Positions 2,716-28,193 of a stretch of DNA of 64,000 bases are shown here, one piece after another. The position numbers and the translations under genes were made by a program. The number at the start of each line of letters is the position of its first letter. Within the stretch, counting starts at the first letter, position 1. Location of the stretch: positions 434,001 through 498,000 of the forward strand of contig CDRNVI010000063.1 in assembly GCA_977017575.1 (NCBI GenBank), given 5' to 3'. This stretch comes from Paramoeba atlantica (taxonomy: Eukaryota; Protista; Discosea). The notes below the pieces were generated by a model that had not been told where the DNA came from, ran no database searches, and worked only from the letters and a program-made list of their open reading frames with translations.

Positions 2716-5595
2716 CGTCGACGGCCTTTGATCTGTGAAATGAACACTTGCGAGAACGAGGAATCCAAGGAAGAAAAGACCGATAAACGGGCCATTAAAA
2801 AAGCAACTCGACTAATGATAGAGGGGTCCACAAAAAAAACAACGCAAATACTAGATCGTAAGTTCGCTGCACATCTACTTTCGGACGAAGAAACTTTACA
2901 AAAACTCCAAGATCTCCACCCGCAAAGCTCTTATGAATTCGATCTTCCCAGAGACGCTCCGATTCTCGGTGGTCTGCATCCCACTGAGTTACGTTCCGCC
3001 GGGTTACGCCTCGCCAAGGGAGCCAGCCCGGAGCCCACGGGAATGACAGACACGATCGTCCGTATCCTGATAGGAAATCCACGCCGCGGGGCATAATAAA
3101 TAACATGTATCGAATAGTAAACAAAGAAACAACTAAAATGTATCTGATTGCTCACAAGCCCTATTTCCCAATCTCAAAACATAACATCAACATTAAACTG
3201 TAAATAATATGTTCTCACGACAATTTTAGGCCTGCAAACATATATGTCACTGTCACTCTGTTAACGGGGTTCCCCCCACCGGAACCCTCGACCAACCTGC
3301 CACAAAAACTTTTGAAACGTAAGTAGAAAAAATAGCCTACCAAGAATATAAAGAATGAATAATGAAATTACAACACTATTTGAAACAAATCATAATTTGA
3401 AGAAATTATGTGCCCCGAAGGGCCAAGCAGGCATAAACAACTCCCTGCCCCGCGGCTAAATTTCCAAACGTGGACTATTAATGATCCCGTCTGTTGTGCG
3501 AATTTCTGTCATATGCTCATGGACCTTGTGAATGGCTTTCTCTCAAAAGACGTAATGCGGCGTTTAACGAGATCAAGACTCATTGCAATACCCAAGACCA
3601 ATGGGGGTGTCCGTCCAGTGGCAGTTGGGGAAGTGATAATGAAATTAGCAGGTTTGGTTTTGGTGCAACGTTTCGAATTCACTCTCCAACCACTTTTCGC
3701 TCCGATACAACAGGGAGTGATGGCGAAGTCCGGCTGCGAAAGGGTTGTGCATACATTGAACTCCCTATACAAGGAAGGTTCATGTATCATGTCAATCAAC
3801 GTCAAGAACGCGTTCAACGCCCCATCAAGAAATGACCTGGCCAGAGCAGTTTACGGATTGGCGACACTTCGACCATTCCAAAGATTCTTTCATGCCGAGT
3901 ACGCAGCTCCTTCAGAACTTCTCTATTACGGTCACGAAGGCAAGCACGTCGGTACTATTCTAAGTACGAACGGAGTAAGACAAGGCTCGACCCTTTCGAC
4001 GGTGTACTTCTGCGCGTTGCTTCAACCAGTGTTGGAAACTCTGGCGGCAAAGTATCCGAAAGTTAAAATAAATGCCTATGTTGACGACATCACACTAGCT
4101 TCTCACAACCCCGAAGAGTTGACAGATGCTTTCCTATACCTCCGCGAGCTACTGACGCATCAAAGCTTATTTGTGGCGAGCCACAAATGCATATGGTTCG
4201 GTGGGAAACAGAAAAAGCGTATGCCAAACGCACTTCGAGACGCGGGAGTCATTGGGGAAGCCGAGGCGTTCAAAGTACTGGGAGCGTTCGTTGGAGATGA
4301 TAAAGTTGTGAGTCAATGTTTGTCGAAGTCGCTGGAGAAACACAACGACATATTCCGTCAACTCAAGCGCATGGGCCCTAGCAACCTGTCATGCAAGATT
4401 CTTTCCAAGTGTGTCAATGTAAGACAAACATATCATATGCGTGTTCACAATCCCGCCGCCTCCGAAAATTCAGCGGAAGGCTTTGACACGGAAACTGAGA
4501 AAGTGGTCGAATCGTGGTTCGGAGAATTAGATGAAGAGCAAATGTCGCTAATACGCATGCCAACGAAGAAAGGGGGATTAGGATTAACAGCATGCGCAAC
4601 GACAAGAAGGGCAGCATATGAATCATCCAGGTACTCGGTTCTTGAGCAACAAGTGAACAACTCAGCTCGGACCGACAACCTCGAAATACAAAGCGCCCAG
4701 GACCAGCAGCACACAAGTATTCCCCCCAATGACATAACAACTACGGCAGCCCAGATACACTCTAGAACCTGGAAGAAATTGACAAGCGGCACATCGGACA
4801 TGTCCAAAATACTCGAGAAAGTAGAATTCAAAGGAAACAGCGAGTGGGTACTGTCGGACACAAAATTAATTCCACCCCACCTCTTCCGACTTGTCATAAT
4901 GCCGAGACTTGGAATTGCACATCCGGATTTGCCCTCCCATATTCTTTGTCCAGGGTGCAAAATTCTTCTGAATTATGACAACATGATACGTCATATTACA
5001 GGATGCTCAAAATGCGCTGGTTTAAACGCAACGGTAAAGCACAGCACCCTGGTCAACTTCTTATACGAACTGTGTTTAAAAACCGGCATTCCGTGTGAAA
5101 AGGAGCCTCGAACTTTTTCCACCATCTCGTTGCACACAATGCAACGAGATGGTTGAACCAAACCACAAACGGACCCACGAACGAGCATGTGGAGGCAGAT
5201 CTTTCCGTCGGTCCGGGCCAGATCTCTTTATCTATTGGGCAAGCGGGGAAATATATTACGACCTAACCGTTGTACATGAACTCGCTCCCTCCAATCTTGC
5301 GACGAAATGCGCCCAGCTGTTTCGAGAGGCCTCCAAGCGCAAACACGACACATACGTGAAAACTGGAAAAATAACGGAAAGCTCATTTCAATGTATCCCC
5401 ATCCTGTCAGGAGGCGCGATGCACATGAACACGCAATCCCTGCTCTCAGCACTTGCGGACGCTAGCGGAAGTCAGCGACAACAAATCAAATCAGAGTTCC
5501 AGATATTGTTACAGGAGCTGAATGGTGCAGTGGCGTACTCACAACTTAGGAAATACATATCACGGGACAGAAAAGAAAGTGAACTCGCCTTTTGA
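2716..5595 (+). pseudogene. 5'-truncated CRE-clade non-LTR retrotransposon (family A), broken by a 407-bp insert and a frameshift near 5120
   Basis: RT motifs GVRQGSTLS and YVDDITL; CPGC...H..GC knuckle; RLE motif SGPDL...YYDLTVVH; starts directly after the type-2 array. Confidence 0.9.
3074..3480 (-). mobile_element. ~400-bp structured non-coding insertion element, copy 1 (antisense to its host ORF)
   Basis: Ends GAAATCCACG...CGTGGACTATTA; removal restores ATA G|AT GAT CCC (RILIDDPVCC); no target duplication. Confidence 0.85.
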
Positions 5596-5759
5596 GACGA
5601 TTGCGTCAGACGAAGAAACGAAGACAAAGATGTCAGGCTATAGGACTCTAGGAAGTGTAATTTGGCCAGTGTCTGGTGACATAAAACTTTAAAACAAAGT
5701 AAAATTGATAATTTGATTGTTTTTAACATTGAGAAGAAAAAGTAATGGTTTGTGCTTAC

Positions 5760-5907
5760 TTTTGCGTGAAACGAAAGTCAACAGAATCAAATCTTTAGGG
5801 GAGGCTATCGAATCTATCGAAGAAAAGCAAAATGAAGCATCCGAATCGATAGAAGTGAGTCGTGATTTAGATCCTCTTCCAAGATTCGCGCAAAAAAAAA
5901 AAAAAAT
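5760..5907 (+). pseudogene. Short fragment of a family-A CRE ORF followed by an A-tract
   Basis: DLDPLPRFAQ matches the DLDPLPPMAQ segment of family-A ORFs. Confidence 0.5.
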
Positions 5908-5943
5908 ATTAAGATCCTACAACGGAGAGGTTCATCGTGTGAT

Positions 5944-6036
5944 GTGTTCTTTATAAAAAAGGTGTTCTTTATAAAAAAAGGTGTTCTTTATAAAAAAGGT
6001 GTTCTTTATAAAAAAGGTGTTCTTTATAAAAAAGGT
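5944..6036. repeat. 18-bp tandem array type 2, about 5 units
   Basis: Read directly. Confidence 0.95.
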
Positions 6037-6048
6037 GGATATAATCTT

Positions 6049-6081
6049 CAACAAGGTACAGAAACTGTATCTTTATCGTTA
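6049..6081 (-). other. Spliced-leader exon retrocopy (33 nt)
   Basis: TAACGATAAAGATACAGTTTCTGTACCTTGTTG; resembles the kinetoplastid mini-exon (AACTAACG...CAGTTTCTGTAC...TTG); not followed by a GT donor. Confidence 0.85.
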
Positions 6082-6498
6082 AATATAAGGGTGTCCACGC
6101 GGGGACCACAAAATTTTCGTACGGATATAATCGGCTAGGGGGGACCGATGAGTACTCATCGTAAGTTGTAGACTTTCGATGAGTCTCACGGAAAGTTGTA
6201 GACTTTCGATGAGTACTCATCGAAGGTGTTTTTGACTTTTTCAATTTTTCGTATTTTATCAATTTTTTGCGAAGGGCCAACTGTGAGCGTAGCCCTGGGA
6301 CATAATAATATTTTTTGGCGACCCGTGCGCTCCATGCGGAGGTGGTGGATATTGGCACGGCGGGCGGAGGAGGAGTTGGCATCACGGCCTTCTTTTTCCG
6401 GCGGGCAGGAGGGAGCGGCAAAATCTCAGGACTACTCCTGATTCTTTTGCTTGGGAGCGTGTGAACACTCCCATGAAAGGTAAAAAAAAGTAAATAAT

Positions 6499-6531
6499 CA
6501 ACAAGGTACAGAAACTGTATCTTTATCGTTA
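6499..6531 (-). other. Spliced-leader exon retrocopy (33 nt) heading a degenerate ORF (MGVFTRSQAK...)
   Basis: Identical 33-mer, then a pyrimidine-rich UTR and an ATG. Confidence 0.85.
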
Positions 6532-7068
6532 AAGATTATTGTACGTGTGCTTCTCTCTAGATTCGTGGGAAGCAATTTGCGAAGCTCAACTACCTTGATA
6601 ACAAATTTTAGTACCCATTTTGGCCGCGCGGGGGCCCCCGCGTGAGCGGGGGTGCGCGCGGCCGCGAAACGGCGAGGGCCCGCGTGAGCGGGCCTGAGCC
6701 GTACCCCGCGTAGGATTCCCCTGTGCGTCGTTAGTGGGAAGCAATTTGCGAAGCTCACTGAATTTCGTGGTTTTCGCTACGCAGGCGTTGTCAACGTATG
6801 TAGTGAAGTGTAGGATACTGAACGCACGGAAAAGGAAAATCAAAAAAAAATCTTGAGTGTTCCACAAAAGTCCTTGACTTCCACCGTAAATTTCCGTTCG
6901 TTGAGAACTCAACGAACGTACCCCCAACCCGTCTACCCCTTCCGCAGGATTGTCCAGAGGCAAGGCCCAACTGTGAGCTTAGCCCTGTTGTTTTTTGTAA
7001 GACGGATTCTTCAGCTATTTTTCCGGTTTTAACGTAGGTATCATGTTTCCGTTACGTTGATGGCCACC

Positions 7069-7766
7069 ACCCTTTCTTTTGTTAAGACCCTTTCTTTTGT
7101 TAAGACCCTTTCTTTTGTTAAGACCCTTTCTTTTGTTAAGACCCTTTCTTTTGTTAAGACCCTTTCTTTTGTTAAGACCCTTTCTTTTGTTAAGACCCTT
7201 TCTTTTGTTAAGACCCTTTCTTTTGTTAAGACCCTTTCTTTTGTTAAGACCCTTTCTTTTGTTAAGACCCTTTCTTTTGTTAAGACCCTTTCTTTTGTTA
7301 AGACCCTTTCTTTTGTTAAGACCCTTTCTTTTGTTAAGACCCTTTCTTTTGTTAAGACCCTTTCTTTTGTTAAGACCCTTTCTTTTGTTAAGACCCTTTC
7401 TTTTGTTAAGACCCTTTCTTTTGTTAAGACCCTTTCTTTTGTTAAGACCCTTTCTTTTGTTAAGACCCTTTCTTTTGTTAAGACCCTTTCTTTTGTTAAG
7501 ACCCTTTCTTTTGTTAAGACCCTTTCTTTTGTTAAGACCCTTTCTTTTGTTAAGACCCTTTCTTTTGTTAAGACCCTTTCTTTTGTTAAGACCCTTTCTT
7601 TTGTTAAGACCCTTTCTTTTGTTAAGACCCTTTCTTTTGTTAAGACCCTTTCTTTTGTTAAGACCCTTTCTTTTGTTAAGACCCTTTCTTTTGTTAAGAC
7701 CCTTTCTTTTGTTAAGACCCTTTCTTTTGTTAAGACCCTTTCTTTTGTTAAGACCCTTTCTTTTGT
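7069..7766. repeat. 18-bp tandem array type 1 (GTTAAGACCCTTTCTTTT)n, about 39 units
   Basis: Read directly. Confidence 0.98.
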
Positions 7767-8289
7767 AATTTCGATTCCGCATCATTGTGAATGAAAGCGA
7801 AGTAACACAAATTTAAAACCAGAATGTTATTGGTGAACTCGTGACGTAAGAAATATAAGGATACTATAAACTATTCTATTTAGGATTCGCGAAAGAATGT
7901 TACATAGTAGAAAACAAAACTAACTTGCTAAAAGAACTCACGACTGGGTGTCGGCGGCACGTGGCGTGGGGAGGCGGGCGGGAAACTTTTTCTTTTCAAA
8001 TAGCGGAAATGTTCTAACACGTACAACAATAATGATAATAATGCCATATGTTTTCGATATAAGACGTAATCAAAATTACTTTCTCAAGTTTACATAATTT
8101 CGATTCCGCATCATTGTGAATGAAAGCGAAGTAACACAAATTTAAAACCAGAATGTTATTGGTGAACTCGTGACGTAAGAAATATAAGGATACTATAAAC
8201 TATTCTATTTAGGATTCGCGAAAGAATGTTACATAGTAGAAAACAAAACTAACTTGCTAAAAGAACTCACGACTGGGTGTCGGCGGCAC
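7767..8289. repeat. B2-spacer-A2-B1 block of split direct repeats (contains the circle junction at 8095/8096)
   Basis: Exact duplications of 194 bp and 110 bp. Confidence 0.93.
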
Positions 8290-11271
8290 CCACCCAGTCG
8301 CAAGTTTGTGTACTCCTCCATCTCGCCAAGTATCATAGCGATTACGACTCCACGCATCAGCCTGATTTTCTTGCGTGGTGACATACTCCGGAAAGACCAG
8401 CATATGATTCAGGTGTAAATAAGACAGGATTCGGGTTAGTACATCGGATATATTGTACGAATCCGCCCATCGTTTCCTCATGGCGGCTTCAACACTTGTG
8501 TTATCCACACGAAGTCGTATAAATTTTACCTGGTTCCAATGCTCTGCAAAGGCTATCAGAGCATTTTCGATCGCCAAGGCTTCCCCGTGATTAATCTCAA
8601 TATCTTTGTCCCAAGCTGCCCCGGTGCCATAAACAGTACCGTCGGGTAGAAAAAGAACTGCACCCCAACCATCTAGGGAAGCGTCGGTGTAGAGAGTAGC
8701 AAATTTTGACGACTCAGCCACGGAATACAGTTGAGGTTGATTATTTTTCACCTCTTGAATCCACCGGTTGAGTTGTACGCTCACCACATACGACAATTTT
8801 ACGGTATCATGCTCTCGTATCATACCTTTGTTTAGCTTCGATATTTGACGTCGAATGAATTTTATAGCCCAGTAGTATCTGGGCATAATAACACCAAGAA
8901 CTGCAGATGCATATACGAGCCTGGCACATAATGATTCATACGCATGTAAGGGAGCGTGTGAAGCAATTTCGTGAGGTATTTTTTTGATGAAGCGATCGCT
9001 CAAATTATAGCACTTTTTGTCGTGATCATAGCGAACACCGAGAAAATCGTACTTCGTTGCATTACACGTATCTTCTTCTTTGAAAGTCATATGTGTCATG
9101 TTTGCTCGCTCGTCAACGAAACGTTCGTAGGCGGTCACTTCGATTTTCGATCCGCAGTATCTTATACCGTCAAGGTAAACATCAAGTTGGTCCGTGCGAA
9201 AACCCTGAGAATCCGCGGTTTGTGCGCTGTAATTCGCGTGCCCCGCAAGAGTTGCCGTTAGAATTTGTTGGATTTCCGGTGCGCATGCATGCCCCATGGG
9301 CATTCGCGTCATTTCGTATGTTGCAGCGCCATAACAAAACCGATAGTAGGCCCGTGTTGCTGCTGGTAGTTCGACTTGAAAGAAACCGGCCTTTAAATCT
9401 CTTTTCATACCCCTTTCGTAACGTACTCTGTTTACGTAAGATACTGGTTGTCCGATCGGGACATCGGCTTTGTATTTATGTTCTAAAGCTAGATTATGAC
9501 TTTTTGGCCAGCATATAAATCGACGTCGGGCACCACTGTCTCTTTCTTCAAAAGTCGTAAACGGTATTATCTGAGCCTTCGTTGGATGGCTTTCCAATTC
9601 TTCATAAGTCACGCGCCGTATTATTTCCGACTTCAGAAGTTTACTGATATCATTTTGTGACAGAGTTGAGCTCTTTACGGAACACAAATTTACATTTTTC
9701 TCTAAACACTGAGGATTGGTTAGTAACTTCCATACCTCGTCAAAACGACACTTCATTTCCGGTTGCATCCAGCTTCTTATGCGAGCAATATCCAAAGAAG
9801 GCACTGATGGGGCATGAAGAGGAAGTTTCATTTCGTCAGGGGTGGGTGGCTGCATCATTCGATGGGGGCGAGACCATACTCTCCGGGTGGAAAATTGGGC
9901 ATCTTTGTCTAGTGTATCCCAGCTTAAATTTAGATCGGTGAGAAATCGAGATTTCAAAGGAGCCTTGTCGTATTCTGCGTTCCTAAAGCTCGCGCGGTGT
10001 GCTCGTTCACCCCCGAGTATCGTAGCAGGGAAGGGAGCTGGCGGTGGTTCGCGATACGCATCACCTCCTCCAATGTGATACGTTTGCCGGCTACATGCTC
10101 CATCAACTGGTGAATAGCCCCCCGTTTGATGGAATGGGAGGAGTATCCTCTGCCCAGATGGCGCCGAAAGAAACGAGTGATTTCCATTGAGCTCAGGGTA
10201 GAAATATGAGTGTTGGGGGAAAGGCAACGTAGGTATTGATATATTTGGTTCGTGTAGGCCCCTTCTATAACTACCATTGTGTCCGGGCGAAAAGGGTGAG
10301 CTTTGGTTGTTTTCGTCTTGTTCCCCCAGTACAGGATGATGCAGTCCGGTCGTGCCACTATGAAATCCCTTCGTTTCAAAAGCGCGACTTCCCCCGCACG
10401 AGATGCGGTTTTGTAGGCAATCAGTACTGTAGCTGCCATTTCTGACGTCATAAATGGTAGCAACTTGTTCAGTTGTGCCTTGGTCAAAGGCTGGGCTTGT
10501 TGAAATGGAATTTGCGATCCGCGCCGAATTAGTGACTTTAGCAGAAGACGGGAATGCGTTGCTAGCTTCCCGGACTGTACCATCAATGCTATAAGGTGCT
10601 TCAGATACGTTTCTTTCGTTTGGAGTGACAAGGACATGTCGTTTATTAGTTTTACGACATCGTCGTCGAATAATTTGAGACGGCGGGAATGCAACATTCG
10701 TAGCAGGCGGGCACGCGTTAACCATGTTGTCTGACACCACATTGGAACTAATGCTTGTTGTGTCGTCCATTTTCTTATGCCCATGACTTCCATTACAAAT
10801 TGAACTTCCTCGCTGTAAGATTTTCTTTGGAATGCTGCTCTTGCTAGGGTGCGACGTTGCGGTAAAGAAACTAGCTTGCTTTTTTGACTTAATGTAATTG
10901 TCTTCAATTGTCCGTGAACCGGAGTTATCCTCTTTTCGCTCTGGAGTTTTATTGGTTGAGATGGATTTGTACTTATTTTGATCGTTTTTACCGAACGGGT
11001 GCGACGTTGCGGTAGAGAAACTAACTTGCTTTTTTGACTTAATGTAATTTGATGGTCGGAATGAAACTTGCTGGACTGTGATTGTTTTAAAACTTTTTTC
11101 ATATTCTGGTTTTGATTTATTGTAGAAAGAACTTTTAAACCTATTTTTTACTGGCTTTTGCCACGGGGGCGGACTTCGGAGAGTCAACTTCGCGGGCCAG
11201 ACCCCCTCCCTTTTTCTTTTCAAATAGCGGAAATGTTCTAACACGTACAACAATAATGATAATAATGCCAT
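8257..11271 (-). CDS. Reverse transcriptase-RNase H polyprotein of YR-2 (N-terminal part overlaps the YR ORF)
   Basis: DLKAGFFQV, MPMGHACAP, VYLDGI (RT); YTDASLDGWGAV, EALAI, VDNTS, NQADAWSR (DIRS-type RNase H). Confidence 0.92.
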   Translation of the reverse strand: MALLSLLLYVLEHFRYLKRKREGVWPAKLTLRSPPPWQKPVKNRFKSSFYNKSKPEYEKSFKTITVQQVSFRPSNYIKSKKQVSFSTATSHPFGKNDQNKYKSISTNKTPERKEDNSGSRTIEDNYIKSKKQASFFTATSHPSKSSIPKKILQRGSSICNGSHGHKKMDDTTSISSNVVSDNMVNACPPATNVAFPPSQIIRRRCRKTNKRHVLVTPNERNVSEAPYSIDGTVREASNAFPSSAKVTNSARIANSISTSPAFDQGTTEQVATIYDVRNGSYSTDCLQNRISCGGSRAFETKGFHSGTTGLHHPVLGEQDENNQSSPFSPGHNGSYRRGLHEPNISIPTLPFPQHSYFYPELNGNHSFLSAPSGQRILLPFHQTGGYSPVDGACSRQTYHIGGGDAYREPPPAPFPATILGGERAHRASFRNAEYDKAPLKSRFLTDLNLSWDTLDKDAQFSTRRVWSRPHRMMQPPTPDEMKLPLHAPSVPSLDIARIRSWMQPEMKCRFDEVWKLLTNPQCLEKNVNLCSVKSSTLSQNDISKLLKSEIIRRVTYEELESHPTKAQIIPFTTFEERDSGARRRFICWPKSHNLALEHKYKADVPIGQPVSYVNRVRYERGMKRDLKAGFFQVELPAATRAYYRFCYGAATYEMTRMPMGHACAPEIQQILTATLAGHANYSAQTADSQGFRTDQLDVYLDGIRYCGSKIEVTAYERFVDERANMTHMTFKEEDTCNATKYDFLGVRYDHDKKCYNLSDRFIKKIPHEIASHAPLHAYESLCARLVYASAVLGVIMPRYYWAIKFIRRQISKLNKGMIREHDTVKLSYVVSVQLNRWIQEVKNNQPQLYSVAESSKFATLYTDASLDGWGAVLFLPDGTVYGTGAAWDKDIEINHGEALAIENALIAFAEHWNQVKFIRLRVDNTSVEAAMRKRWADSYNISDVLTRILSYLHLNHMLVFPEYVTTQENQADAWSRNRYDTWRDGGVHKLATGWVPPTPSREFF
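9954..11102 (-). CDS. Tyrosine recombinase of YR-2
   Basis: YKTASRAGE (R), YSSHSIKRGA (HxxR), ANHRQLPSLLRY (H...Y); true start may be internal. Confidence 0.9.
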   Translation of the reverse strand: MKKVLKQSQSSKFHSDHQITLSQKSKLVSLPQRRTRSVKTIKISTNPSQPIKLQSEKRITPVHGQLKTITLSQKSKLVSLPQRRTLARAAFQRKSYSEEVQFVMEVMGIRKWTTQQALVPMWCQTTWLTRARLLRMLHSRRLKLFDDDVVKLINDMSLSLQTKETYLKHLIALMVQSGKLATHSRLLLKSLIRRGSQIPFQQAQPLTKAQLNKLLPFMTSEMAATVLIAYKTASRAGEVALLKRRDFIVARPDCIILYWGNKTKTTKAHPFRPDTMVVIEGAYTNQIYQYLRCLSPNTHISTLSSMEITRFFRRHLGRGYSSHSIKRGAIHQLMEHVAGKRITLEEVMRIANHRQLPSLLRYSGVNEHTARALGTQNTTRLL

Positions 11272-11319
11272 ATGTTTTCGATATAAGACGTAATCAAAAT
11301 TACTTTCTCAAGTTTACAT

Positions 11320-14300
11320 TAAGACCCTTTCTTTTGTTAAGACCCTTTCTTTTGTTAAGACCCTTTCTTTTGTTAAGACCCTTTCTTTTGTTAAGACCCT
11401 TTCTTTTGTTAAGACCCTTTCTTTTGTTAAGACCCTTTCTTTTGTTAAGACCCTTTCTTTTGTTAAGACCCTTTCTTTTGTTAAGACCCTTTCTTTTGTT
11501 AAGACCCTTTCTTTTGTTAAGACCCTTTCCTTTGTTAAGACCCTTTCCTTTGTTAAGACCCTTTCTTTTGTTAAGACCCTTTCTTTTGTTAAGACCCTTT
11601 CTTTTGTTAAGACCCTTTCTTTTGTTAAGACCCTTTCTTTTGTTAAGACCCTTTCTTTTGTTAAGACCCTTTCTTTTGTTAAGGCCCTTTCTTTTGTTAA
11701 GACCCTTTCTTTTGTTAAGACCCTTTCTTTTGTTAAGACCCTTTCTTTTGTTAAGACCCTTTCTTTTGTTAAGACCCTTTCTTTTGTTAAGACCCTTTCT
11801 TTTGTTAAGACCCTTTCTTTTGTTAAGACCCTTTCTTTTGTTAAGACCCTTTCTTTTGTTAAGACCCTTTCTTTTGTTAAGACCCTTTCTTTTGTTAAGA
11901 CCCTTTCTTTTGTTAAGACCCTTTCTTTTGTTAAGACCCTTTCTTTTGTTAATACCCTTTCTTTTGTTAAGACCCTTTCTTTTGTTAAGACCCTTTCTTT
12001 TGTTAAGACCCTTTCTTTTGTTAAGACCCTTTCTTTTGTTAAGACCCTTTCTTTTGTTAAGACCCTTTCTTTTGTTAAGACCCTTTCTTTTGTTAAGACC
12101 CTTTCTTTTGTTAAGACCCTTTCTTTTGTTAAGACCCTTTCTTTTGTTAAGACCCTTTCTTTTGTTAAGACCCTTTCTTTTGTTAAGACCCTTTCTTTTG
12201 TTAAGACCCTTTCTTTTGTTAAGACCCTTTCTTTTGTTAAGACCCTTTCTTTTGTTAAGACCCTTTCTTTTGTTAAGACCCTTTCTTTTGTTAAGACCCT
12301 TTCTTTTGTTAAGACCCTTTCTTTTGTTAAGACCCTTTCTTTTGTTAAGACCCTTTCTTTTGTTAAGACCCTTTCTTTTGTTAAGACCCTTTCTTTTGTT
12401 AAGACCCTTTCTTTTGTTAAGACCCTTTCTTTTGTTAAGACCCTTTCTTTTGTTAAGACCCTTTCTTTTGTTAAGACCCTTTCTTTTGTTAAGACCCTTT
12501 CTTTTGTTAAGACCCTTTCTTTTGTTAAGACCCTTTCTTTTGTTAAGACCCTTTCTTTTGTTAAGACCCTTTCTTTTGTTAAGACCCTTTCTTTTGTTAA
12601 GACCCTTTCTTTTGTTAAGACCCTTTCTTTTGTTAAGACCCTTTCTTTTGTTAAGACCCTTTCTTTTGTTAAGACCCTTTCTTTTGTTAAGACCCTTTCT
12701 TTTGTTAAGACCCTTTCTTTTGTTAAGACCCTTTCTTTTGTTAAGACCCTTTCTTTTGTTAATACCCTTTCTTTTGTTAAGACCCTTTCTTTTGTTAAGA
12801 CCCTTTCTTTTGTTAAGACCCTTTCTTTTGTTAAGACCCTTTCTTTTGTTAAGACCCTTTCTTTTGTTAAGACCCTTTCTTTTGTTAAGACCCTTTCTTT
12901 TGTTAAGACCCTTTCTTTTGTTAAGACCCTTTCTTTTGTTAAGACCCTTTCTTTTGTTAAGACCCTTTCTTTTGTTAAGACCCTTTCTTTTGTTAAGACC
13001 CTTTCTTTTGTTAAGACCCTTTCTTTTGTTAAGACCCTTTCTTTTGTTAAGACCCTTTCTTTTGTTAAGACCCTTTCTTTTGTTAAGACCCTTTCTTTTG
13101 TTAAGACCCTTTCTTTTGTTAAGACCCTTTCTTTTGTTAAGACCCTTTCTTTTGTTAAGACCCTTTCTTTTGTTAAGACCCTTTCTTTTGTTAAGACCCT
13201 TTCTTTTGTTAAGACCCTTTCTTTTGTTAAGACCCTTTCTTTTGTTAAGACCCTTTCTTTTGTTAAGACCCTTTCTTTTGTTAAGACCCTTTCTTTTGTT
13301 AAGACCCTTTCTTTTGTTAAGACCCTTTCTTTTGTTAAGACCCTTTCTTTTGTTAAGACCCTTTCTTTTGTTAAGACCCTTTCTTTTGTTAAGACCCTTT
13401 CTTTTGTTAAGACCCTTTCTTTTGTTAAGACCCTTTCTTTTGTTAAGACCCTTTCTTTTGTTAAGACCCTTTCTTTTGTTAAGACCCTTTCTTTTGTTAA
13501 GACCCTTTCTTTTGTTAAGACCCTTTCTTTTGTTAAGACCCTTTCTTTTGTTAAGACCCTTTCTTTTGTTAAGACCCTTTCTTTTGTTAAGACCCTTTCT
13601 TTTGTTAAGACCCTTTCTTTTGTTAAGACCCTTTCTTTTGTTAAGACCCTTTCTTTTGTTAAGACCCTTTCTTTTGTTAAGACCCTTTCTTTTGTTAAGA
13701 CCCTTTCTTTTGTTAAGACCCTTTCTTTTGTTAAGACCCTTTCTTTTGTTAAGACCCTTTCTTTTGTTAAGACCCTTTCTTTTGTTAAGACCCTTTCTTT
13801 TGTTAAGACCCTTTCTTTTGTTAAGACCCTTTCTTTTGTTAAGACCCTTTCTTTTGTTAAGACCCTTTCTTTTGTTAAGACCCTTTCTTTTGTTAAGACC
13901 CTTTCTTTTGTTAAGACCCTTTCTTTTGTTAAGACCCTTTCTTTTGTTAAGACCCTTTCTTTTGTTAAGACCCTTTCTTTTGTTAAGACCCTTTCTTTTG
14001 TTAAGATCCTTTCTTTTGTTAAGACCCTTTCTTTTGTTAAGACCCTTTCTTTTGTTAAGACCCTTTCTTTTGTTAAGACCCTTTCTTTTGTTAAGACCCT
14101 TTCTTTTGTTAAGACCCTTTCTTTTGTTATGATCCTTTCTTTTGTTAAGACCCTTTCTTTTGTTAAGACCCTTTCTTTTGTTAAGACCCTTTCTTTTGTT
14201 AAGACCCTTTCTTTTGTTAAGACCCTTTCTTTTGTTAAGACCCTTTCTTTTGTTAAGACCCTTTCTTTTGTTAAGACCCTTTCTTTTGTTAAGACCCTTT

Positions 14301-17300: not shown

Positions 17301-18234
17301 CCCTTTCTTTTGTTAAGACCCTTTCTTTTGTTAAGACCCTTTCTTTTGTTAAGACCCTTTCTTTTGTTAAGACCCTTTCTTTTGTTAAGACCCTTTCTTT
17401 TGTTAAGACCCTTTCTTTTGTTAAGACCCTTTCTTTTGTTAAGACCCTTTCTTTTGTTAAGACCCTTTCTTTTGTTAAGACCCTTTCTTTTGTTAAGACC
17501 CTTTCTTTTGTTAAGACCCTTTCTTTTGTTAAGACCCTTTCTTTTGTTAAGACCCTTTCTTTTGTTAAGACCCTTTCTTTTGTTAAGACCCTTTCTTTTG
17601 TTAAGACCCTTTCTTTTGTTAAGACCCTTTCTTTTGTTAAGACCCTTTCTTTTGTTAAGACCCTTTCTTTTGTTAAGACCCTTTCTTTTGTTAAGACCCT
17701 TTCTTTTGTTAAGACCCTTTCTTTTGTTAAGACCCTTTCTTTTGTTAAGACCCTTTCTTTTGTTAAGACCCTTTCTTTTGTTAAGACCCTTTCTTTTGTT
17801 AAGACCCTTTCTTTTGTTAAGACCCTTTCTTTTGTTAAGACCCTTTCTTTTGTTAAGACCCTTTCTTTTGTTAAGACCCTTTCTTTTGTTAAGACCCTTT
17901 CTTTTGTTAAGACCCTTTCTTTTGTTAAGACCCTTTCTTTTGTTAAGACCCTTTCTTTTGTTAAGACCCTTTCTTTTGTTAAGACCCTTTCTTTTGTTAA
18001 GACCCTTTCTTTTGTTAAGACCCTTTCTTTTGTTAAGACCCTTTCTTTTGTTAAGACCCTTTCTTTTGTTAAGACCCTTTCTTTTGTTAAGACCCTTTCT
18101 TTTGTTAAGACCCTTTCTTTTGTTAAGACCCTTTCTTTTGTTAAGACCCTTTCTTTTGTTAAGACCCTTTCTTTTGTTAAGACCCTTTCTTTTGTTAACA
18201 AAAGAAAGGGTCTTAACAAAAGAAAGGGTCTTAA
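11320..18234. repeat. Long type-1 18-bp array (about 380 units) ending in two inverted units (18197-18234)
   Basis: Read directly; rare single-base variants; orientation flips at GTTAAC 18194-18199. Confidence 0.98.
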
Positions 18235-18569: not shown

Positions 18570-21500
18570 TTAGTGTTCAAGTCCTCCGAGCCACTGAATT
18601 GGTGGAAAGTATTGTCGGAGTTGCGTGGCAATTGTGTACGCGTTCATCTTCTCTATTTCAAGTTGGAACGCTTCTTTGACATCCTTCACGTTTTGTTGTG
18701 ACCGTTGTGCGAGCGAGACAATGAGAGTTTTCGTGTTGTTGTGCAACTGTCCTAATTCGGTCATTGCCAAGCAGCTGAAACTTTCTTTCGGTATGCCCCC
18801 TTGTACAACGTATTTTTTGTGCTTGCGCTCAAGGGCATTTTGGATTAACTGCTCGACGGAGGTTTTGGCATAGCTCGGGGCACAACTGTGAACTACGGTG
18901 ACATCGTAGAGAATTTCTCCGAGATGGGACCACATGATACCGAGATCAGGGCCTGATCGCATACGTCTTGCTCTGCATGGGTGATGTTCAGAGAGCTCTT
19001 CGGATATGGTGGCCTTACATTTGGTGCAGAAGAATGATGAATGTACTCGAGGTTCTATAACATGGGGCACCCCTGCTTTGGCACACAATTCACCTAGGAA
19101 ATCCACGCCGAGGGGGCTCCATGAAACTGATAAGTAACAAACAAATATAAGTAAATACATATGACTAATATAATCACACTTCCAAATCGTCCCAAAATCA
19201 AAGAACACATAATACGATATATAGATAGAATTCACATGCACAAACATAGTTCAAAAGAAAGCCTGCATAGAACCAATAATAATGTGTCACGTTGTTAACG
19301 GGGTTCCCCCCCACCGGAACCCTCGGCCAAATGGCTGGGGGCTTGGTGGGTGGGCACAAAAACTTAAAGTGAAGTAAAATAACAACCTAACAAGGATATA
19401 TAAGATAATAGTAAATACCCATCCCATGTAAAATTCTGAATACAAATCATAATTCGAAGAAACTATGTGCCCCGAAGGGCCAGCAGGCAAATATATAACA
19501 GCCCCTCGGCTAAATTTCAAAACGTGGACTATTAGAAACGGACTAATCGTGTGTGCTTCTTCGTTGCATTTATCCCACAGCATTGTGTACATCCAGGAAT
19601 GTGCTGGAAGATGGTATCAGAAGAGTATTCTGTCAGGCATCCCGGGCATACCACACTCTTAGGCATATTTTCTGGCACTATTCCCAGGCGCATCATTATA
19701 CAGAAACGGAAGAGGTACGGATTGATGTAGTTGCTGGTTGATTGCAGGTGGTGAAATGATGCGGATCCTCGCTCCATTAGTTCTTTGAGGCGCATGTCCT
19801 TTCTCAGCTCGGTTGCAAATCGTTTTTGTTCAGATCGTATTGCTTTCATGACTAATCGCTTGGAAGTATCATTCTTCTGGCTGTCACGTTCGTTCAGAGC
19901 CCTGTTTCGCTTGGATCCCGCTATGACCACCGGAGCGTTATTGGTTTTGGATTGCTCTTCAATGGCTTTGCGAGACGCTTGGAAAAAGTGCTTTTGCTTC
20001 AAACATGACGGAGTAAGTCCGAGTCCGCCGAGATATTGCGGAAGTGTGGCGAGTTTTGCAGTAGGGCCCGTTGCATTAAACCAATGCTGAATAATACTGC
20101 CTACTTCCGCGTCGAACTGCTGGGCGATTTCAAGGGATGCTTCGGGCTTGTGTACTCGGAGGTGATAGTCTTGACGGGGGATGGCGCACCGATTCAGAAT
20201 TGCGAGGGATAGGTTGCTCGGTCCCATGAGTCGAAGACGGCGAAAGAGACACTTGTGTTTGTCCATCTTTTTCTTTAGGCATTCACTTACCATCTCGTCC
20301 TGTCCGATATATGCACCTAGAATTTTCACTGTTTCTTGCGGGCAGGCTACCCCCATCGCTTGCAGAGTTTGGGGCGTCCATGGAGTGTCTGTTTTCTTGA
20401 ACCATTCGCATTTCTGGAAGTTCATTTCCAGTCCCAGAAGTCGTGAAGATTCGTGCAGGTGTAGAAAGGCGGTCTGCAAGGATAGGGGATTTGTTGATGA
20501 CAAGGTTATGTCGTCCATGTACGCTCGAACCGTTACATCTGGAAAGGACTCTTCGATTTCTTTGAGCGAATCCTGTATCAGGGCACAGAAGTATAGTGAC
20601 GAAAGCGCTGAGCCCTGTCGAACGCCAGAAGTGCTCTTCACGATCGAATGGAGCGAGTTATTGGCAAAGAAGAGCAGATCAGACGAGTCCCCGTACTCAA
20701 GATTAAAAATCCGCATGAAAGGTTTGAAGATGCCGTCTTTCTTGAGTGCTTCGAAGATTGCTTGACGCGTGGGGGTATTGTAGGCATTCTTATAATCGAT
20801 CGCCAAGATGGCGTGTCCCTTGTCATATTCATCGAGCACCTCGTGAACAATTCCCTCGCACGCATTCTTTTGGAGGATCCCTCTTTGGACAGGCTGGAAA
20901 AATTTCTTCAGTTTCTCTTCGTTCCTGTTTAGAAGGATCGAGCCACATACTTTCAATAGAGTCTCCCCAATTGCAATCGGTCGTATTCCGTTCTGCGGTT
21001 TGTTGATGGCCATTAGTCGACATCGTGTCAGTCTGTCACGCACCGACGATGCGATCTCCCCGTTCACTACATCGCGTAACATATGGCAGAGCGCGGTGCT
21101 GGATTCCTCGTCATCCGCAAGTAGGCGCAACATGGCTTCACTCAATCCCGTAGGGCCCGGGGAAGCTCCCGGAGCCAGTTTCTCTATCGCGGCCCGAAGT
21201 TCGTGTTTTTCGATGATTCCTGTTCGGGGGTCTGCGTCCGTCTGAGCTTGTGGGCGCTCTCCATCGGGATGTAGACTCTTGAGCTCCGCTACTTTCTCCT
21301 CAACGCTAAGGTTCGAGTCAAAATATACGTTGTCGAGGATACGCGTAGCTTTGCTTAGGTTACCAGCCCTAGCCGTTCGAAGCGCACTGCGGATTGATCG
21401 GCGGTCGACTTCACGTTCAAGTTTCTCGTCAGGTGAGGAGAACGCCGGCTCCTCGTTGCGCAATTTGTTTGGCACATGATACTTCCGCTGGATCGCTTGT

Positions 21501-22260
21501 CGCACAGTGGTGAGTGAGTCGCGGGGTGCGTTTAGAAACTTGTGCCAGACGGATGTTTTCTCTGTTATAAGCTTGAGCGTGGGATATCCTCGCAGGATTG
21601 ATCTAAAGATTGCTATGACGTGAGCGGCAAACGTGGGGTCGATGTGGGCGAGTGGGGGAAGAGGCTCCAAGTCGCATCCCGTGTCACAATCTTGTGTTTC
21701 TTCGATATCCAAAAATGGCGTTTGTGTCACAATACGGTTGAGCTTTACCACCCGTAATCGGAAGATGTTAATCTTGTGAGATGCAGGTAGATATAGAAAT
21801 CCTGATGGACCTGGCTGATGCTGCGGTGTGTAGGAAATCTTTACCCTGATTGCACCTTTTCTAGAATGTCGCGTAACAACTTCTCCAATCGACTGATAAA
21901 TCTCACTGCTGTGGCGGAATTTCCAATGTAGCTCGCAAGTAGTTCCTTTTCCCCAGTCGTTGATTATCTTTAGTATTTGGTCCGGAGCTTTCATTGTTTC
22001 TTCGGCGACCTCGGCCACCCGATCGTCCTCCGAGATGTCTGATCCTGATGCAGATGAGCTCTCCGATCCTTCGTCATGTGACATGTCCGCTTGTCCGAGG
22101 TTCGCCTTCGTTAGATCAGAGCTACGGAGTATCACTTTTACCTTTTTCGGAGTTTTCTTCAGTCGTGTCTCTTTTCTGATCTTAATTTTCAAGGATGACT
22201 CTCCAGTTTGACTTCTTCGTAGAATTTCATTTCTCCGAACACTGGCAAAAGCGGTTTCCT
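18570..22260 (-). pseudogene. CRE-clade non-LTR element (family A), ORF split by a 437-bp insert
   Basis: ORF 19532..22192 (GVRQGSALSS, AYMDDITL) continues in 18570..19097 (RSGPDLGIMW...LYDVTVVH) once the insert is removed. Confidence 0.92.
19098..19534 (-). mobile_element. ~400-bp structured non-coding insertion element, copy 2 (sense to its host)
   Basis: TAATAGTCCACG...CGTGGATTTC; removal gives CGT TTC|CTA GGT (RFLG). Confidence 0.88.
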
Positions 22261-24306: not shown

Positions 24307-24308
24307 AG

Positions 24309-24804
24309 TTGTTAAGACCCTTTCTTTTGTTAATACCCTTTCTTTTGTTAAGACCCTTTCTTTTGTTAAGACCCTTTCTTTTGTTAAGACCCTTTCTTTT
24401 GTTAAGACCCTTTCTTTTGTTAAGACCCTTTCTTTTGTTAAGACCCTTTCTTTTGTTAAGACCCTTTCTTTTGTTAAGACCCTTTCTTTTGTTAAGACCC
24501 TTTCTTTTGTTAAGACCCTTTCTTTTGTTAAGACCCTTTCTTTTGTTAAGACCCTTTCTTTTGTTAAGACCCTTTCTTTTGTTAAGACCCTTTCTTTTGT
24601 TAAGACCCTTTCTTTTGTTAAGACCCTTTCTTTTGTTAAGACCCTTTCTTTTGTTAAGACCCTTTCTTTTGTTAAGACCCTTTCTTTTGTTAAGACCCTT
24701 TCTTTTGTTAAGACCCTTTCTTTTGTTAAGACCCTTTCTTTTGTTAAGACCCTTTCTTTTGTTAAGACCCTTTCTTTTGTTAAGACCCTTTCTTTTGTTA
24801 AGAC
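24309..24804. repeat. Type-1 18-bp array, about 27 units, followed by a T-tract
   Basis: Read directly. Confidence 0.97.
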
Positions 24805-24910
24805 TTTTTTTTTTTTTTTTTTTTTTTTTTGAGACAGAACTACAGAGCTACCGAAATATAACATCCATCATGTATAATGTTTTTTTTTTTTTTTTTTTTT
24901 TTTTTTTGAC

Positions 24911-25020
24911 AGGATGAGGCACGAGACATTATTTGCTCCCATTCTCCGCAATCTTCTAAAAATTGTTTTATGCTTACGAAGATTCCAGTTGAATAGCACA
25001 TTTTGAATATCACTTTTCAA
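24911..25020 (-). pseudogene. Small family-A CRE RT fragment next to a T-tract
   Basis: KHKTIFRRLRRMGANNVSCLILSK matches KHNDIFRQLKRMGPSNLSCKILSK. Confidence 0.6.
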
Positions 25021-27792
25021 CCTAGAATAACAATCCTTCTTTTTTTTATTTAATTTCATTTATTTCTATATAATATAATAAAATATCTTTTTTTTTAGAC
25101 GAAGGTAACTATATTTAGATATATTCGCCATCATTTGTGCAAAGGGGCGATTATTCGAAAATTTTGATTTTGCTAAATTTTTTTTCTAATTATGTAAAGG
25201 TAAGGGTGGTGGTCCAAAATTTTCGAGTTGCAAAGTAAAGCAAAAGCTTTATTAACTTTTGCAAAAAGTTTTAACTTATGGAAATTGTTTCTAATGTTCA
25301 ATAAAATAAAATCATATATTTCGTCTGAACGATTACCTGACTTTCCGAGTATAATTACTAACACAAGTTTACATTTTTGTCATTGTGATATTTGTCCTTC
25401 AGGAAAATAACCATAAAGTAAAGTAAAGTGCTCAGTTTGCGTTTACTGGGAAAGATTAGTTGTGTTAATAAAACCGTTTAAGGAAAGATTAGTTACTTAG
25501 TCCGCCTATCCAGTTGCAGTGTGGGATCACGTCTCTTAGTTGGCATACAACTGTGTATGCATTGAATTTTTCAACTGCTAGTCGGAAGGCATCGCGTGTG
25601 TCTTTAGGATTGAGGTGTGCCCGTGCTGCTAAAACAGAGATGAGTCTTTTAGTGTCTTCATGGAGAAGCCCACAATCAGTCACCGCTAAGCATTTGAACG
25701 CCTCTGGTTCCAAACCATTCTGTTCTACATACTTTTTATTTTTCCTGGCCAGTGCGTTTTCCATTAGTTGTTCAGGGGTGAACTTTGCATTTGACACCGT
25801 ACAAGTATGTACAACAGTTACGTCATACAATATCTCTCCCTGGTGAGGCCACATTATTCCCAAGTCAGGACCAGAACGTATCCGACGCGCTCTACACGCA
25901 TGTCGTTCAGCTGCATCTGCAGAAATACTTGCCTTGCACTTTGTGCAATAGAATGAAGCATGTACTCGAGGTTCGACCACGTGAGGGAGCCCAGCCTTGG
26001 TGCATAAATCTGAAAGCAAACGGATCAGGTGTGTGTGTTTCTTCGTGGTGTTCATACCTGAACATTGTGCGCAGCCCGCAACATGATGAAGAAGGCCGTT
26101 TCCTTCTTGCTGTGACCCGCATCCCGGACAATGGCAAATCCCTGAGGCTTTCGGGAGTGATATCCCCAATCGCATCATTATGGAATATCGGAAAAGATAG
26201 GGATTGATGTAATCATTAGTGGAGACCAAGTGTGAATTCGAGTCCTTTGTTCTGCTAATGACTTCACTTAATCGCTTGTTTGCTTTGATTTCTGACAGCA
26301 CTTTTGTTTGCTCTTCGCGAATTGCTTTAGAGGCCTTAGTTTTTATTTTCATCGGATTCAAAGTAACGCCACTAACTTTCTCAACAGCTTGTTGACCTAC
26401 CGGAGCTTTAGTGGATATTTTATGCTCATCAATAGATCGTCTGGCTGCTTCAAAAAGGTACCGTTGCTTTAAGGTGGACTGAGTGAGACCAAGACCTCCC
26501 ATTTTTTGCGGTAGAGTTGCGAGGCGGAGTGAGTCACCTGTGGCGAGAAACCAGTGTGAGATAATTCTTGATATTTCAACATCGAAGCATTCCGCAATTT
26601 TCAGTGTAGCTGCTGGTTTGTGGACGCGCAAAAAGTAATCCTGTCGTGGAATCGTGCATCGTTGCAACATTGCTAACGAAAGATTGCTTGGGCCCATGAT
26701 TTGCAAACGTCGAAAAAGGCATACATGCTTTACTGACTGTCGTACGAGCTTTTCACTAACGTCCTCATTCTCCCCTATGTAGGCGCCTAGGATCTTGACA
26801 GATTTCTCCGGTGACGATAGACCAGCTTTCTGCAATGCCAGTGGACAGTTTTTTGCTCCTTTCTGAAACCACTCTGTTTTATTGCAGTTGACATCAAGTG
26901 ATAAGTCTTTAGAAAGTTCTTGAAGATGGAGGAAAGCGGCTTCTAGGGATAAAGTGTTTCGAGATGAAAGCGTGATGTCGTCCATATATGCTCGGATCGT
27001 GACTTCAGGAAAAAGATCGGCTACTTCAGCTAGGATGGGATGTATTAAGCTACAAAAGTAGAGAGATGAGAGCGCTGAACCTTGTCGTACTCCAGATGTG
27101 CTTTTGATTGTTGAATAGAATGTGTTGTCAGCAAAGAAAAGAAGATCAGATGGCTCGGAGTACTCTAGGAAAAAGAGGCGCATAAATGGTCTGAAAACAT
27201 CATGCTTTTGAAGAGTTTCTGCAATGGCGATTCTGTTTGGTGTGTTGAATGCGTTAGTGTAATCGACTGTGACGATCTTGTGGTCTGCCTCGTATTCTTC
27301 TATCAGTTCATGCACAATTTGCTCACACGCATTCTTTTGTAGTATGCCTCGTTGGAAGGTTTGAAAGTGCTTTTTAAGCGCGTCTTCATGTCGTTGCAAA
27401 AGAATGATGCCACACACTTTAAGGATGGTCTCTCCTATAGCGATCGGGCGCAGTTTATTTATTTGTTTGGGCAAAGCTACTAATCTGCATCTTGTGAGTC
27501 GATCACGCACCGAGTTTGGAATGTCGCCATTGATCACGTCGCGGAACATGTGGCATAAGCAAATGCTGCATTCTTCATCGTCGGCGAGAAGTCGCAACAT
27601 CGATTCGCTGAAACCTGTAGGTCCGGGGGAAGCACCCTTTGCCAATTTGCTGGCCGCTAAGAGGAGTTCGTCTCGTTCAACAATTCCAATGCGCGGAAAG
27701 TCAACACTCATCGGCATTTGAGGCGTTTTCCCGGAAGGATGGAGACTTTTTAGAAGAGAAACTTTTTCTTCGACAGTCAGGGGTGATTGTTT

Positions 27793-28193
27793 GAAATCCA
27801 CGCCGAGGGGCTCCCTGGAAACATATACACTGATAACATATATGAATAAATGAACAACTATGAATAGCTCAATCGTAATTCAAAATGACACAACATATCA
27901 TTCATTCATTTCACACGCACAAAGATGGAAAAGAAACAAGCCTGCATAAAACAACACAATCAATGTCACTCTGTTAACGGGGTTCCCCCCCCCACCGGAA
28001 CCCTCGGCCAACCTGCACAAAACTTTAAACGTAACAAAATAACAACCTAACAAGAATATAACAAACGAGTAAACACCCCCCTCCATGCAATTAGAGAATA
28101 CTACATCATAATTTGAGAAAATTATGTGCCCCGAAGGGCCAGCAGGCAAATATATAGCCGCCCCTCGGCTAAATTTCAAAACGTGAACTATTA
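27793..28193 (-). mobile_element. ~400-bp structured non-coding insertion element, copy 3 (sense to its host)
   Basis: TAATAGTTCACG...CGTGGATTTC; removal gives GTC TAC|AAA CAA (NVYKQS, compare NVYKES in the intact paralog). Confidence 0.88.

Follow-up and report, generated by a model that had tools for sequence, protein, structure and literature searches.

Three 400-bp insertions in reverse transcriptase genes of Paramoeba atlantica as probable terminal-repeat units of VIPER-like retrotransposons

Three short insertions in non-LTR reverse transcriptase genes

The window analysed here is a stretch of 64,000 nucleotides of the Paramoeba atlantica genome (assembly GCA_977017575.1, contig CDRNVI010000063.1, positions 434,001 to 498,000 of the forward strand). 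It contains three insertions of about 400 bp, each lying within a gene for a non-LTR reverse transcriptase (RT). The original prediction had described them as three diverged copies of one element, and their coordinates are borne out by our analysis (Table 1). All three copies read on the minus strand, where they start with TAATAGTYCACG and end with CGTGGATTTC, and each is composed of a segment A (~178 bp) followed by a segment B (~220 bp). As had been noted, the units are devoid of a conserved ORF.

Table 1. Positions of the units, their parts and host ORFs in the window, and of the repeats and ORFs of the full element L034 (numbered within that locus)
Feature	Position	Strand	Remarks
Copy 1, family A	3074-3480	-	407 bp A-B unit, A1/B1 type
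Copy 1 parts	A = 3480-3301; join GCAGGT = 3300-3295; B = 3294-3074	-	
Host ORF downstream of copy 1	3408-5156	+	non-LTR RT; RVT_1 E 4.8e-18; flank frames
Copy 2, family B	19098-19534	-	437 bp A-B unit, A2-linker-B2 (SIRE-like) type
Copy 2 parts	A = 19534-19355; C-rich 23-nt linker = 19354-19332; B = 19331-19098	-	
Host ORF of copy 2	19532-22192	-	non-LTR RT, shortened by the element's TAA; RVT_1 E 7.5e-23
Host ORF downstream of copy 3	25489-27801	-	non-LTR RT; RVT_1 E 8e-21
Copy 3, family C	27793-28193	-	401 bp A-B unit, A1/B1 type
Copy 3 parts	A = 28193-28016; join CAGGT = 28015-28011; B = 28010-27793	-	
Junction helix 5' half, copy 3	28161-28177	-	unit positions 17-33, GAAATTTAGCCGAGGGG; RNAalifold, pair counts, folds of real B1|A2 junctions
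Junction helix 3' half, copy 3	27793-27810	-	last 18 nt of B, CCCCTCGGCGTGGATTTC
AG of the spliced-leader acceptor inside A, copy 3	28047-28048	-	unit positions 146-147; pyrimidine tract before
L034 repeats	A1 = 1818-1995; B1 = 8900-9126; A2-linker-B2 = 9127-9546		
L034 ORFs	2908-4170; 4174-5358; 4551-6794		in the order gag, recombinase, RT/RNase H

The closest solved relatives of the host RTs are R2 proteins (E 5e-11 for the host of copy 2). Copy 1 is antisense to its plus-strand host, the frame of which runs on from 2563-3073, and copies 2 and 3 are sense to theirs, confirming the orientations previously assigned. In both sense copies the TAA TAG at the start of the unit is indeed in frame with the host, and the host ORFs end at 19532 (copy 2) and 28191 (copy 3).

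Empty-site paralogues are present for all three hosts, and comparison with them shows that the flanks abut exactly, with no target duplication and not a single nucleotide lost at the three window copies; the insertions are therefore as clean as had been claimed. Specifically, the microhomology between the empty site and the element end amounts to 0 nt for copy 1, 4 nt (TTTC) for copy 2 and 1 nt for copy 3. The lengths of the copies (407, 437 and 401 nt) all leave a remainder of 2 when divided by three, and the expected restoration of the host frame upon removal holds for the three copies, in that the frames of both flanks, read one by one rather than as a joined sequence, fit without the element. 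A role in silencing or parasitising the RT genes had also been put forward; silencing found no support and is unneeded, as units nested within other retrotransposons are nothing unusual in a region rich in repeats.

Full-length elements with the same ends

The insertions had been presented as an unrecognised element. Nevertheless, the longer, enzyme-coding copies that had been suggested as a check do exist: elements of 5-8 kb, encoding gag, a recombinase and RT/RNase H, are bounded by the same TAATAG... and ...GGATTTC ends as the 400-bp units. Their plan is A1 - gag (CCHC) - recombinase - RT/RNase H - B1 - A2 - 23-nt linker - B2, with direct repeats split between a 5' A1 and a 3' B1-A2-B2 block, and this is the plan published for VIPER and SIRE. 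In the element at locus L034, A1 and A2 are 100% identical and B1 and B2 99% identical, and the same split direct repeat plan was found in L035, L033 and about 25 further loci. The A segment of copy 3 is 100% identical to A1 of L034 and its B segment 99-100% identical to B1 copies, while copy 2 is 98-100% identical to other units of family B. At L025 the flanks of the insertion continue an 18-bp repeat exactly, again without target duplication. Related contigs from other samples, L072-L074, share the gene order of L034; their terminal repeats differ from the unit and bring no gain for the covariation test described below.

The gag ORF carries a CCHC knuckle. In the recombinase ORF we recognised the motifs ARW, HSIKRG, KH and LRY, with HxxR and the terminal Y conserved. 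For a structural model of this protein (L034:4504-5358) the best 33 Foldseek matches were all Cre (top E 2.8e-5, probability 1.0), the confidence of the model being low (pLDDT 61.5) and the TM about 0.3. A recombinase profile searched against solved structures gave only three matches, to the P2 and HP1 integrases (E 0.025-0.17), and a search for homologues of the recombinase returned seven unnamed relatives, with no named VIPER protein among them. The RT/RNase H profile A5 matched the Ty3 RT/RNase H (E 1.7e-4) and Ty3 Gag-Pol (E 0.004), and RT motif C reads YVDG or FIDG. When the L034 ORFs were searched against Pfam, the recombinase was unrecognised and RVT_1 was weak; RVT_1 was likewise weak in two homologues (E 0.019 and 0.032), and the RT scores sit under the Pfam cut-offs. 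RT_RNaseH was detected (E 7.9e-5) in the homologue L073, which shares 34% identity with the L034 ORF across an alignment of 418 aa. Solved structures queried with single sequences yielded nothing useful, and the AlphaFold model of the RT/RNase H ORF, with a pLDDT of 31, was too poor to use.

The genome contains at least 69 matches to the unit, mostly as conserved interior plus B-A-B, and the 40 nt upstream are identical from locus to locus. The B|A junction occurs 73 times in the genome and the start of A 208 times. At least six diverged families are present, and arrays with a 5.1-kb period were also observed. The A2 + linker + B2 form is represented by copy 2 and by the solo units L003 and L008. 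In copies 1 and 3 the linker is absent and A is joined to the 5-8 nt preceding B1; the join of copy 1, AAGTTTTTGTGGCAGG, occurs once in the genome, and that of copy 3 is equally without a sibling.

Since the same ends bound full elements encoding gag, recombinase and RT/RNase H, we conclude, with a probability of roughly 0.9, that the 400-bp insertions are the A+B split-direct-repeat unit of a VIPER-like (DIRS-order) retrotransposon, and thus the counterpart of SIRE. The placement in the VIPER clade is suggested by architecture and gene order rather than by a tree. Ngaro- and PAT-like elements likewise have A1...B1-A2-B2 split direct repeats and integrate by a recombinase. Their gene order is gag - RT/RNase H - recombinase, whereas here the recombinase lies upstream of the RT, which sets them aside. 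DIRS1-like elements, with inverted terminal repeats and an internal complementary region, are also discarded, given that the repeats found here are direct.

The junction helix and the sense strand

The pairing of the two ends proposed in the original prediction is real. We recovered both the GCCGAGGGG/CCCCTCGGC pairing and the compensatory change that copy 1 shows in it, and a third pairing state, GGCGAGGGC/GCCCTCGCC, is found in further families. The junction helix comprises 17 pairs; by RNAalifold and pair counts, 100% of the cells are paired and three pairs are changed on both sides, compared with 44-63% of cells paired when the partner is slid as a control. The covariation comes from three sequence states only, so that the best permutation result possible is 12/720. 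The end of the element coincides with the last paired C of the helix. At the B|A junction this helix forms an 18-bp hairpin with a 16-nt loop (z = -3.8 to -5.0), in which the presumed cut falls at the stem-loop boundary. As RNA, this hairpin is more stable on the sense strand by 4-8 kcal/mol, and the strand starting with TAATAG, previously favoured as the folded one, is the one transcribed as sense. Equal covariation would also be expected if a protein dimer bound the site as a double-stranded palindrome, and we take the junction helix to be a recombinase site and/or a structure of the sense RNA that joins the ends.

The remaining structures fared differently. Four families conserve the GCCC-TTCG-GGGC hairpin and two families carry another hairpin instead. 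The proposed long-range GCCTGC/GCAGGC pairing has no covariation support and is not predicted by RNAalifold. The originally proposed AGTYCACG/CGTGGATT helix and an alternative GAAATTTA/TGGATTTC helix are mutually exclusive, and a two-sided change is seen in neither.

Concerning transcription, a read contig was found whose loose end joins the spliced leader at the AG inside A. The same breakpoint is common to nine genomic joints between the spliced leader and A, one of them inside L034. These joints are spliced-leader fossils and demonstrate that the sense strand is transcribed, trans-spliced and copied. Together with the RT/RNase H of the partner elements, they show a passage through RNA.

Origin of the short units and comparison with known systems

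How the short units arose is a separate matter from what they are. We lean slightly towards the view that the short unit inserted as a molecule of its own. Judging from the element class, the product of reverse transcription would be a closed molecule with B linked to A, and the recombinase of the element would open B|A between ...GGATTTC and TAATAG... and join it to a target chosen with little stringency. Even a molecule of A and B alone would keep the B|A junction, so that the recombinase of full copies could insert it in trans. Copy 2 has the A2-linker-B2 form, and copies 1 and 3 are A1...B1 forms whose whole interior was lost at a GTG microhomology, most likely through a template switch during reverse transcription. 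As neither the join of copy 1 nor that of copy 3 recurs in the genome, these forms have no siblings that would prove their movement as units. The account taken as a whole, that is a VIPER-like terminal-repeat unit with its insertion and origin, we hold to be very likely.

The unit may instead never have moved, if a full element inserted and then shrank in place, either by A1 x A2 recombination, leaving A-linker-B2, or by internal deletion. We regard this course of events as possible but less probable. Direct repeats of 178 and 220 bp with 99-100% identity invite recombination, and the unique joins of copies 1 and 3, together with the seven variants seen among 13 A1/B1-type joins, are as expected of independent deletions; a duplication-free, exact site is expected under both readings. 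However, some joins recur on different contigs, and an A1-B1 join derived from a full A1...B1-A2-B2 element requires two separate deletions. Moreover, no difference from other copies is seen in copy 2 or its 500-bp flanks (100% identity), leaving little time for insertion followed by shrinkage, and tandem B-(A-B)3 arrays as well as interior-less A-B dimers exist in the genome. Solo LTRs, which arise by in-place shrinkage, are comparable in being short non-coding repeat units at sites also used by full elements, but they keep the target duplication and arise in place only, whereas the units described here lack a duplication and may insert as units.

Two further explanations dispense with the terminal-repeat identity, and both appear very improbable. 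The unit could be a structured RNA element in its own right, akin to an intron or carrying a ribozyme, that leaves host transcripts and moves by its own RNA chemistry, in keeping with ends that pair as in euglenid non-conventional introns and with the stronger structure of the sense strand. Against this stand the protein-coding retrotransposons bounded by the same ends, the antisense orientation of one of the three copies and the truncation of the host by the in-frame TAA TAG in the sense copies. Splicing in the manner of non-conventional introns, as originally proposed, found no support: the sole 401-nt skip of the unit in the reads is a contig that agrees with the empty paralogues in both depth and sequence. 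Rfam returned no relevant match for the window at the gathering score, for a tandem trimer at E <= 10 or for five families at E <= 1, the sole matches being to a low-complexity hairpin outside the element. The recommended Rfam check thus gave no ribozyme, intron or other family in the unit. A non-autonomous DNA transposon (MITE, Helitron-like or Crypton-derived) merely sharing its ends with retrotransposons would likewise be short, non-coding and free of target duplication, with an inverted repeat near its ends, and Cryptons, too, use tyrosine recombinases. Nevertheless, MITE-type terminal inverted repeats with duplication are absent: the two ends, TAATAG... and ...GGATTTC, do not match as inverted copies, and the inverted repeat is subterminal and asymmetric, which rejects a MITE or TIR transposon. 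Helitrons are ruled out by ends and flanks, the ends not being 5'-TC...CTRR-3' and the sites not A|T, and the RT/RNase H and spliced-leader fossils of the partner elements speak against this reading.

With the terminal-repeat reading, the inference of a mobile element stands as regards a non-coding unit without target duplication, associated with a tyrosine recombinase and with a circle junction, and falls as regards a new class of structured mobile RNA; a false lead is thereby removed. What is gained is a well-resolved example from an element class that has received little study, with six diverged families in one genome and exact empty sites. In it, short A-B units arise by two routes, the target preference is weak, and a covarying hairpin at the junction most likely marks where the recombinase acts.

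At loxP-type core sites and at folded integron attC sites, strand exchange takes place between the arms of an inverted repeat; the attC site is a folded single strand, conserved in structure and variable in sequence. Here, by contrast, the spacer or loop measures 16 nt instead of 6-8, and the site is predicted from sequence. Like integron integrases acting on attC, the recombinase might conceivably use the junction hairpin in the form of a folded single strand (cDNA or RNA-templated), an idea that we consider unlikely. If true, it would explain insertion without duplication and with almost no target homology. Any A-B minicircle or hairpin-bearing cDNA would then be a self-sufficient substrate, so that SIRE-like units would be true mobile parasites of VIPER-like elements, not debris.

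VIPER of Trypanosoma cruzi has A1...B1 A2 B2 repeats and no target duplication, and SIRE, its short derivative, consists of 185 bp + ~30 bp + 220 bp, equal to A2+B2 (PMC6681497, PMC12278014). The elements described here share with them the split direct repeats, the order gag - recombinase - RT/RNase H, the lack of duplication and a short derivative with a private linker (178 + 23 + 220 bp). They differ in comprising at least six diverged families in one genome, in a second short form with A1 joined to B1, in the YVDG/FIDG form of RT motif C and in the want of a named VIPER protein among the recombinase homologues. Whether SIRE is mobile or debris was left undecided (PMC6681497), and the A-B forms found here make this question testable. 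TATE, a VIPER-like recombinase retrotransposon of Leishmania Viannia and other kinetoplastids, has the same repeat plan and forms tandem clusters (PMC6681497), comparable to the arrays reported above. TATE targets telomeric hexamers, whereas the preference observed here is loose, with C at -1, A at +3 and a purine at +7/+8 among the matches listed.

Insertion sites and hosts

The original prediction located three copies of the ~400-bp unit in this DNA, and all three were recovered at the claimed positions. They lie on the minus strand, the TAATAG-first strand being the reverse complement of the window, and their alignment shows fixed ends and conserved islands separated by variable AT-rich filler. 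When the 1.4-kb stretches around each copy were searched in the genome to which the window belongs (248 contigs, 45.7 Mb in total), each host was found to have paralogues in which the two flanks directly adjoin. Side-by-side comparison clearly confirmed the proposed clean insertion, as occupied minus empty site leaves exactly the element for 3/3 copies. Specifically, neither target duplication nor base loss was detected at the three copies when empty paralogues were compared with occupied sites; the overlap of the site with the TTTC end of the element is 0, 4 and 1 nt for copies 1, 2 and 3, respectively.

Host frames, read from each flank separately, are open on both sides and are restored on removing 407, 437 or 401 nt, as anticipated. 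The predicted mixed orientation also held (copy 1 antisense to its host, copies 2 and 3 sense), together with the in-frame TAA TAG of both sense copies and the lack of coding capacity, no conserved ORF having been found within the units. The hosts, non-LTR reverse-transcriptase genes, contain RVT_1, and their closest solved relatives are R2 proteins.

Full-length elements and two kinds of short unit

A genome search with the unit returned at least 69 matches, the majority of which do not stand alone: behind a conserved interior come first the unit's second half and then a complete unit. With A standing for the initial ~178 nt of the unit and B for its final ~220 nt, the usual layout reads interior-B-A-B, and DNA fetched upstream showed that the elements start with A. 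At L034, which contains a full-length element, identity is 100% between A1 and A2 and 99% between B1 and B2. Between the repeats lie three coding regions: a gag ORF with a CCHC knuckle, a recombinase ORF with the tyrosine-recombinase HxxR and terminal tyrosine motifs, and RT/RNase H. Cre accounts for the top 33 Foldseek matches to the low-confidence recombinase model (best E 2.8e-5), while the recombinase profile matches only P2 and HP1 integrases among solved structures. The RT/RNase H profile matches Ty3 RT/RNase H (E 1.7e-4), and a 34%-identical homologue from another sample has an RT_RNaseH match and the same gene order. Motif C in this lineage is YVDG/FIDG, compared to the usual YxDD, and is kept between the two samples at that identity.

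The published VIPER and TATE plan consists of A1...B1-A2-B2 split direct repeats without target duplication, carrying gag followed by overlapping recombinase and RT/RNase H, and T. cruzi SIRE comprises a 185 bp 5' end, ~30 private bp and a 220 bp 3' end (PMC6681497, PMC12278014). The P. atlantica elements follow this plan. SIRE equals A2+B2 in composition and the sizes nearly coincide (178 + 23 + 220 in P. atlantica, 185 + ~30 + 220 in SIRE). The feature is real and was correctly observed, and longer copies encoding enzymes exist; it belongs to a known kind of element, with a SIRE-like short form, rather than to an unrecognised one.

Copy 2 carries the 23-nt C-rich linker and is therefore of the A2-linker-B2 form. 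This linker, CCCACCCACCRASCCCCCAGCC, is kept between A2 and B2 in all six families, even beside unalignable sequence, and a G-run close to the B start, GGTGGGGGG, is likewise conserved; both are candidate priming signals. A starts number 208 in the genome and B|A junctions 73; if every element were intact, we would estimate, among the matches listed, ~60-70 that are full or long and about as many that are short. In addition, one element ends in a B-(A-B)3 tandem array, and the B repeats of sequence family A return every 5093 bp, indicating that whole elements are arrayed head to tail.

Location of features (L034, locus with a full-length element; L073, homologous contig from another sample; G000, the window's own genome, C numbers its contigs)
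Feature	Location	Strand	Remark
Copy 1	window 3074-3480	-	
Copy 2	window 19098-19534	-	
Copy 3	window 27793-28193	-	
A1	L034:1818-1995		
B1	L034:8900-9126		
A2 + 23-nt linker + B2	L034:9127-9546		
Linker	window 19332-19354	-	
Linker	L034:9305-9327		
RT motif C variants	L034:5400-6794; L073:2155-3933		
Leader within element	L034:1996-2210		G000:C43
B-(A-B)3 array	G000:C40:57600-59083		
Family A B repeats	G000:C1:10745-26250		
Left-edge element	window 241-2535	-	extends beyond left edge
Its gag	window 1390-2535	-	CCHC knuckle
Its recombinase homologue	window 241-1311	-	49% identical to L034 recombinase (tblastx)
Diverged A start	window 30473	-	
Spliced-leader fossil	window 30347-30316	-	
Retrocopy	window 56978-57621 (also given as 56954-57600)		
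Nested retrocopy	L034:7769-8394		5952-6577 from element's first base
18-bp satellites	window 2551-2715, 7069-7766, 11319-18198, 24309-24804		

RNA passage, junction pairing and target sites

In one read contig the spliced leader is joined to A directly after AG (unit positions 146-147), and nine genomic spliced-leader/A joints share this breakpoint; thus, the TAATAG-first strand is the one that is transcribed and trans-spliced, and its RNA is reverse transcribed. In L034, the order after A1 is ~147 nt of interior, the spliced leader, the final 30 nt of A and a second start of the interior, an arrangement resembling a preserved template switch from an mRNA that had been trans-spliced.

Pairing between the unit ends with a compensatory change, as originally described, was substantiated by RNAalifold on units of six families. 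Unit positions 17-33 pair with the final 18 nt of B, all cells being paired, compared to 44-63% when the partner was slid along. Three pairs are altered on both sides (GCCGAGGGG/CCCCTCGGC, GCCGCGGGG/CCCCGCGGC, GGCGAGGGC/GCCCTCGCC); the covariation rests on three sequence states, and the best possible permutation result is 12/720. At a real B1|A2 junction the halves fold into a hairpin whose 18-bp stem has one bulge and whose 16-nt loop is TAATAGTYCACGTTTK (z-scores -3.8 to -5.0); the element boundary falls at the last stem pair. Folded as RNA, the sense strand has a stability advantage of 4-8 kcal/mol owing to G-U pairs; folded as DNA, the strands are nearly equal. The proposed AGTYCACG/CGTGGATT helix is possible as an alternative, but it shares its 3' letters with the junction helix and shows no two-sided change, only C-to-T changes preserving G-U pairs.

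With several positions tested on the unique flanks in hand (19 upstream, 41 downstream), a weak target preference appeared: C directly before the element in 11/19 (p = 9e-4), A at the third base after it in 22/41, and a purine at bases 7 and 8 in 36/41 and 33/41 (uncorrected p = 4e-7 and 6e-5). It partly resembles the junction's own TTC|TAAT, an echo consistent with the published suggestion that recombinases of the DIRS type rely on a very short junction-target match (PMC7192593).

Origin of the short units and neighbouring repeats

The architecture and coding capacity of the elements, their exact insertion and passage through RNA, and the conserved pairing at the junction are observed steps. 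To these may be added a closed intermediate in which B is joined to A and which the recombinase would cut open at that junction. Short A-B molecules would come from template switching or from resolution between two junctions, and would then be inserted in trans as molecules of their own, a reading to which we assign a probability of about 0.55. Shrinkage in place is a less likely alternative. Copies 1 and 3 have no linker; instead, their A runs directly into the 5-8 nt (GGCAGGT) found just ahead of B1 in full elements. Since A ends in TTTTGTG and GTGTGTGTGG stands directly before B1, they look like elements whose whole interior was lost at a GTG microhomology. The genome contains 13 A-B1-type joins, which fall into 7 variants; the joins of copies 1 and 3 occur once each, and certain others are shared by different contigs. 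Insertion in trans remains our preferred reading. Specialist interest attaches to the hairpin at the junction and to the existence of two short-unit types.

Across the read contigs and Rfam searches, an intron reading found no support; the ribozyme idea likewise failed to gain a supporting Rfam result, and a DNA-transposon reading is unsupported.

A further VIPER-like element at the left edge of the window adjoins an 18-bp repeat. Such satellites (up to 382 copies, 99-100% identity) explain both the strongly skewed block of low GC and the artefactual long ORFs seen at 11-18 kb; elsewhere, at two other loci (L025, L011), units of this element family are inserted into 18-bp-type repeats. A diverged A start, TAAAAGTTTACG, without a B end nearby, is followed by a spliced-leader fossil, so that window 30316-30473 (-) is probably the 5' end of another family. 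Finally, the window holds a spliced-leader-to-poly(A) retrocopy, a 93%-identical copy of which is nested in L034 and interrupts its RNase H region.
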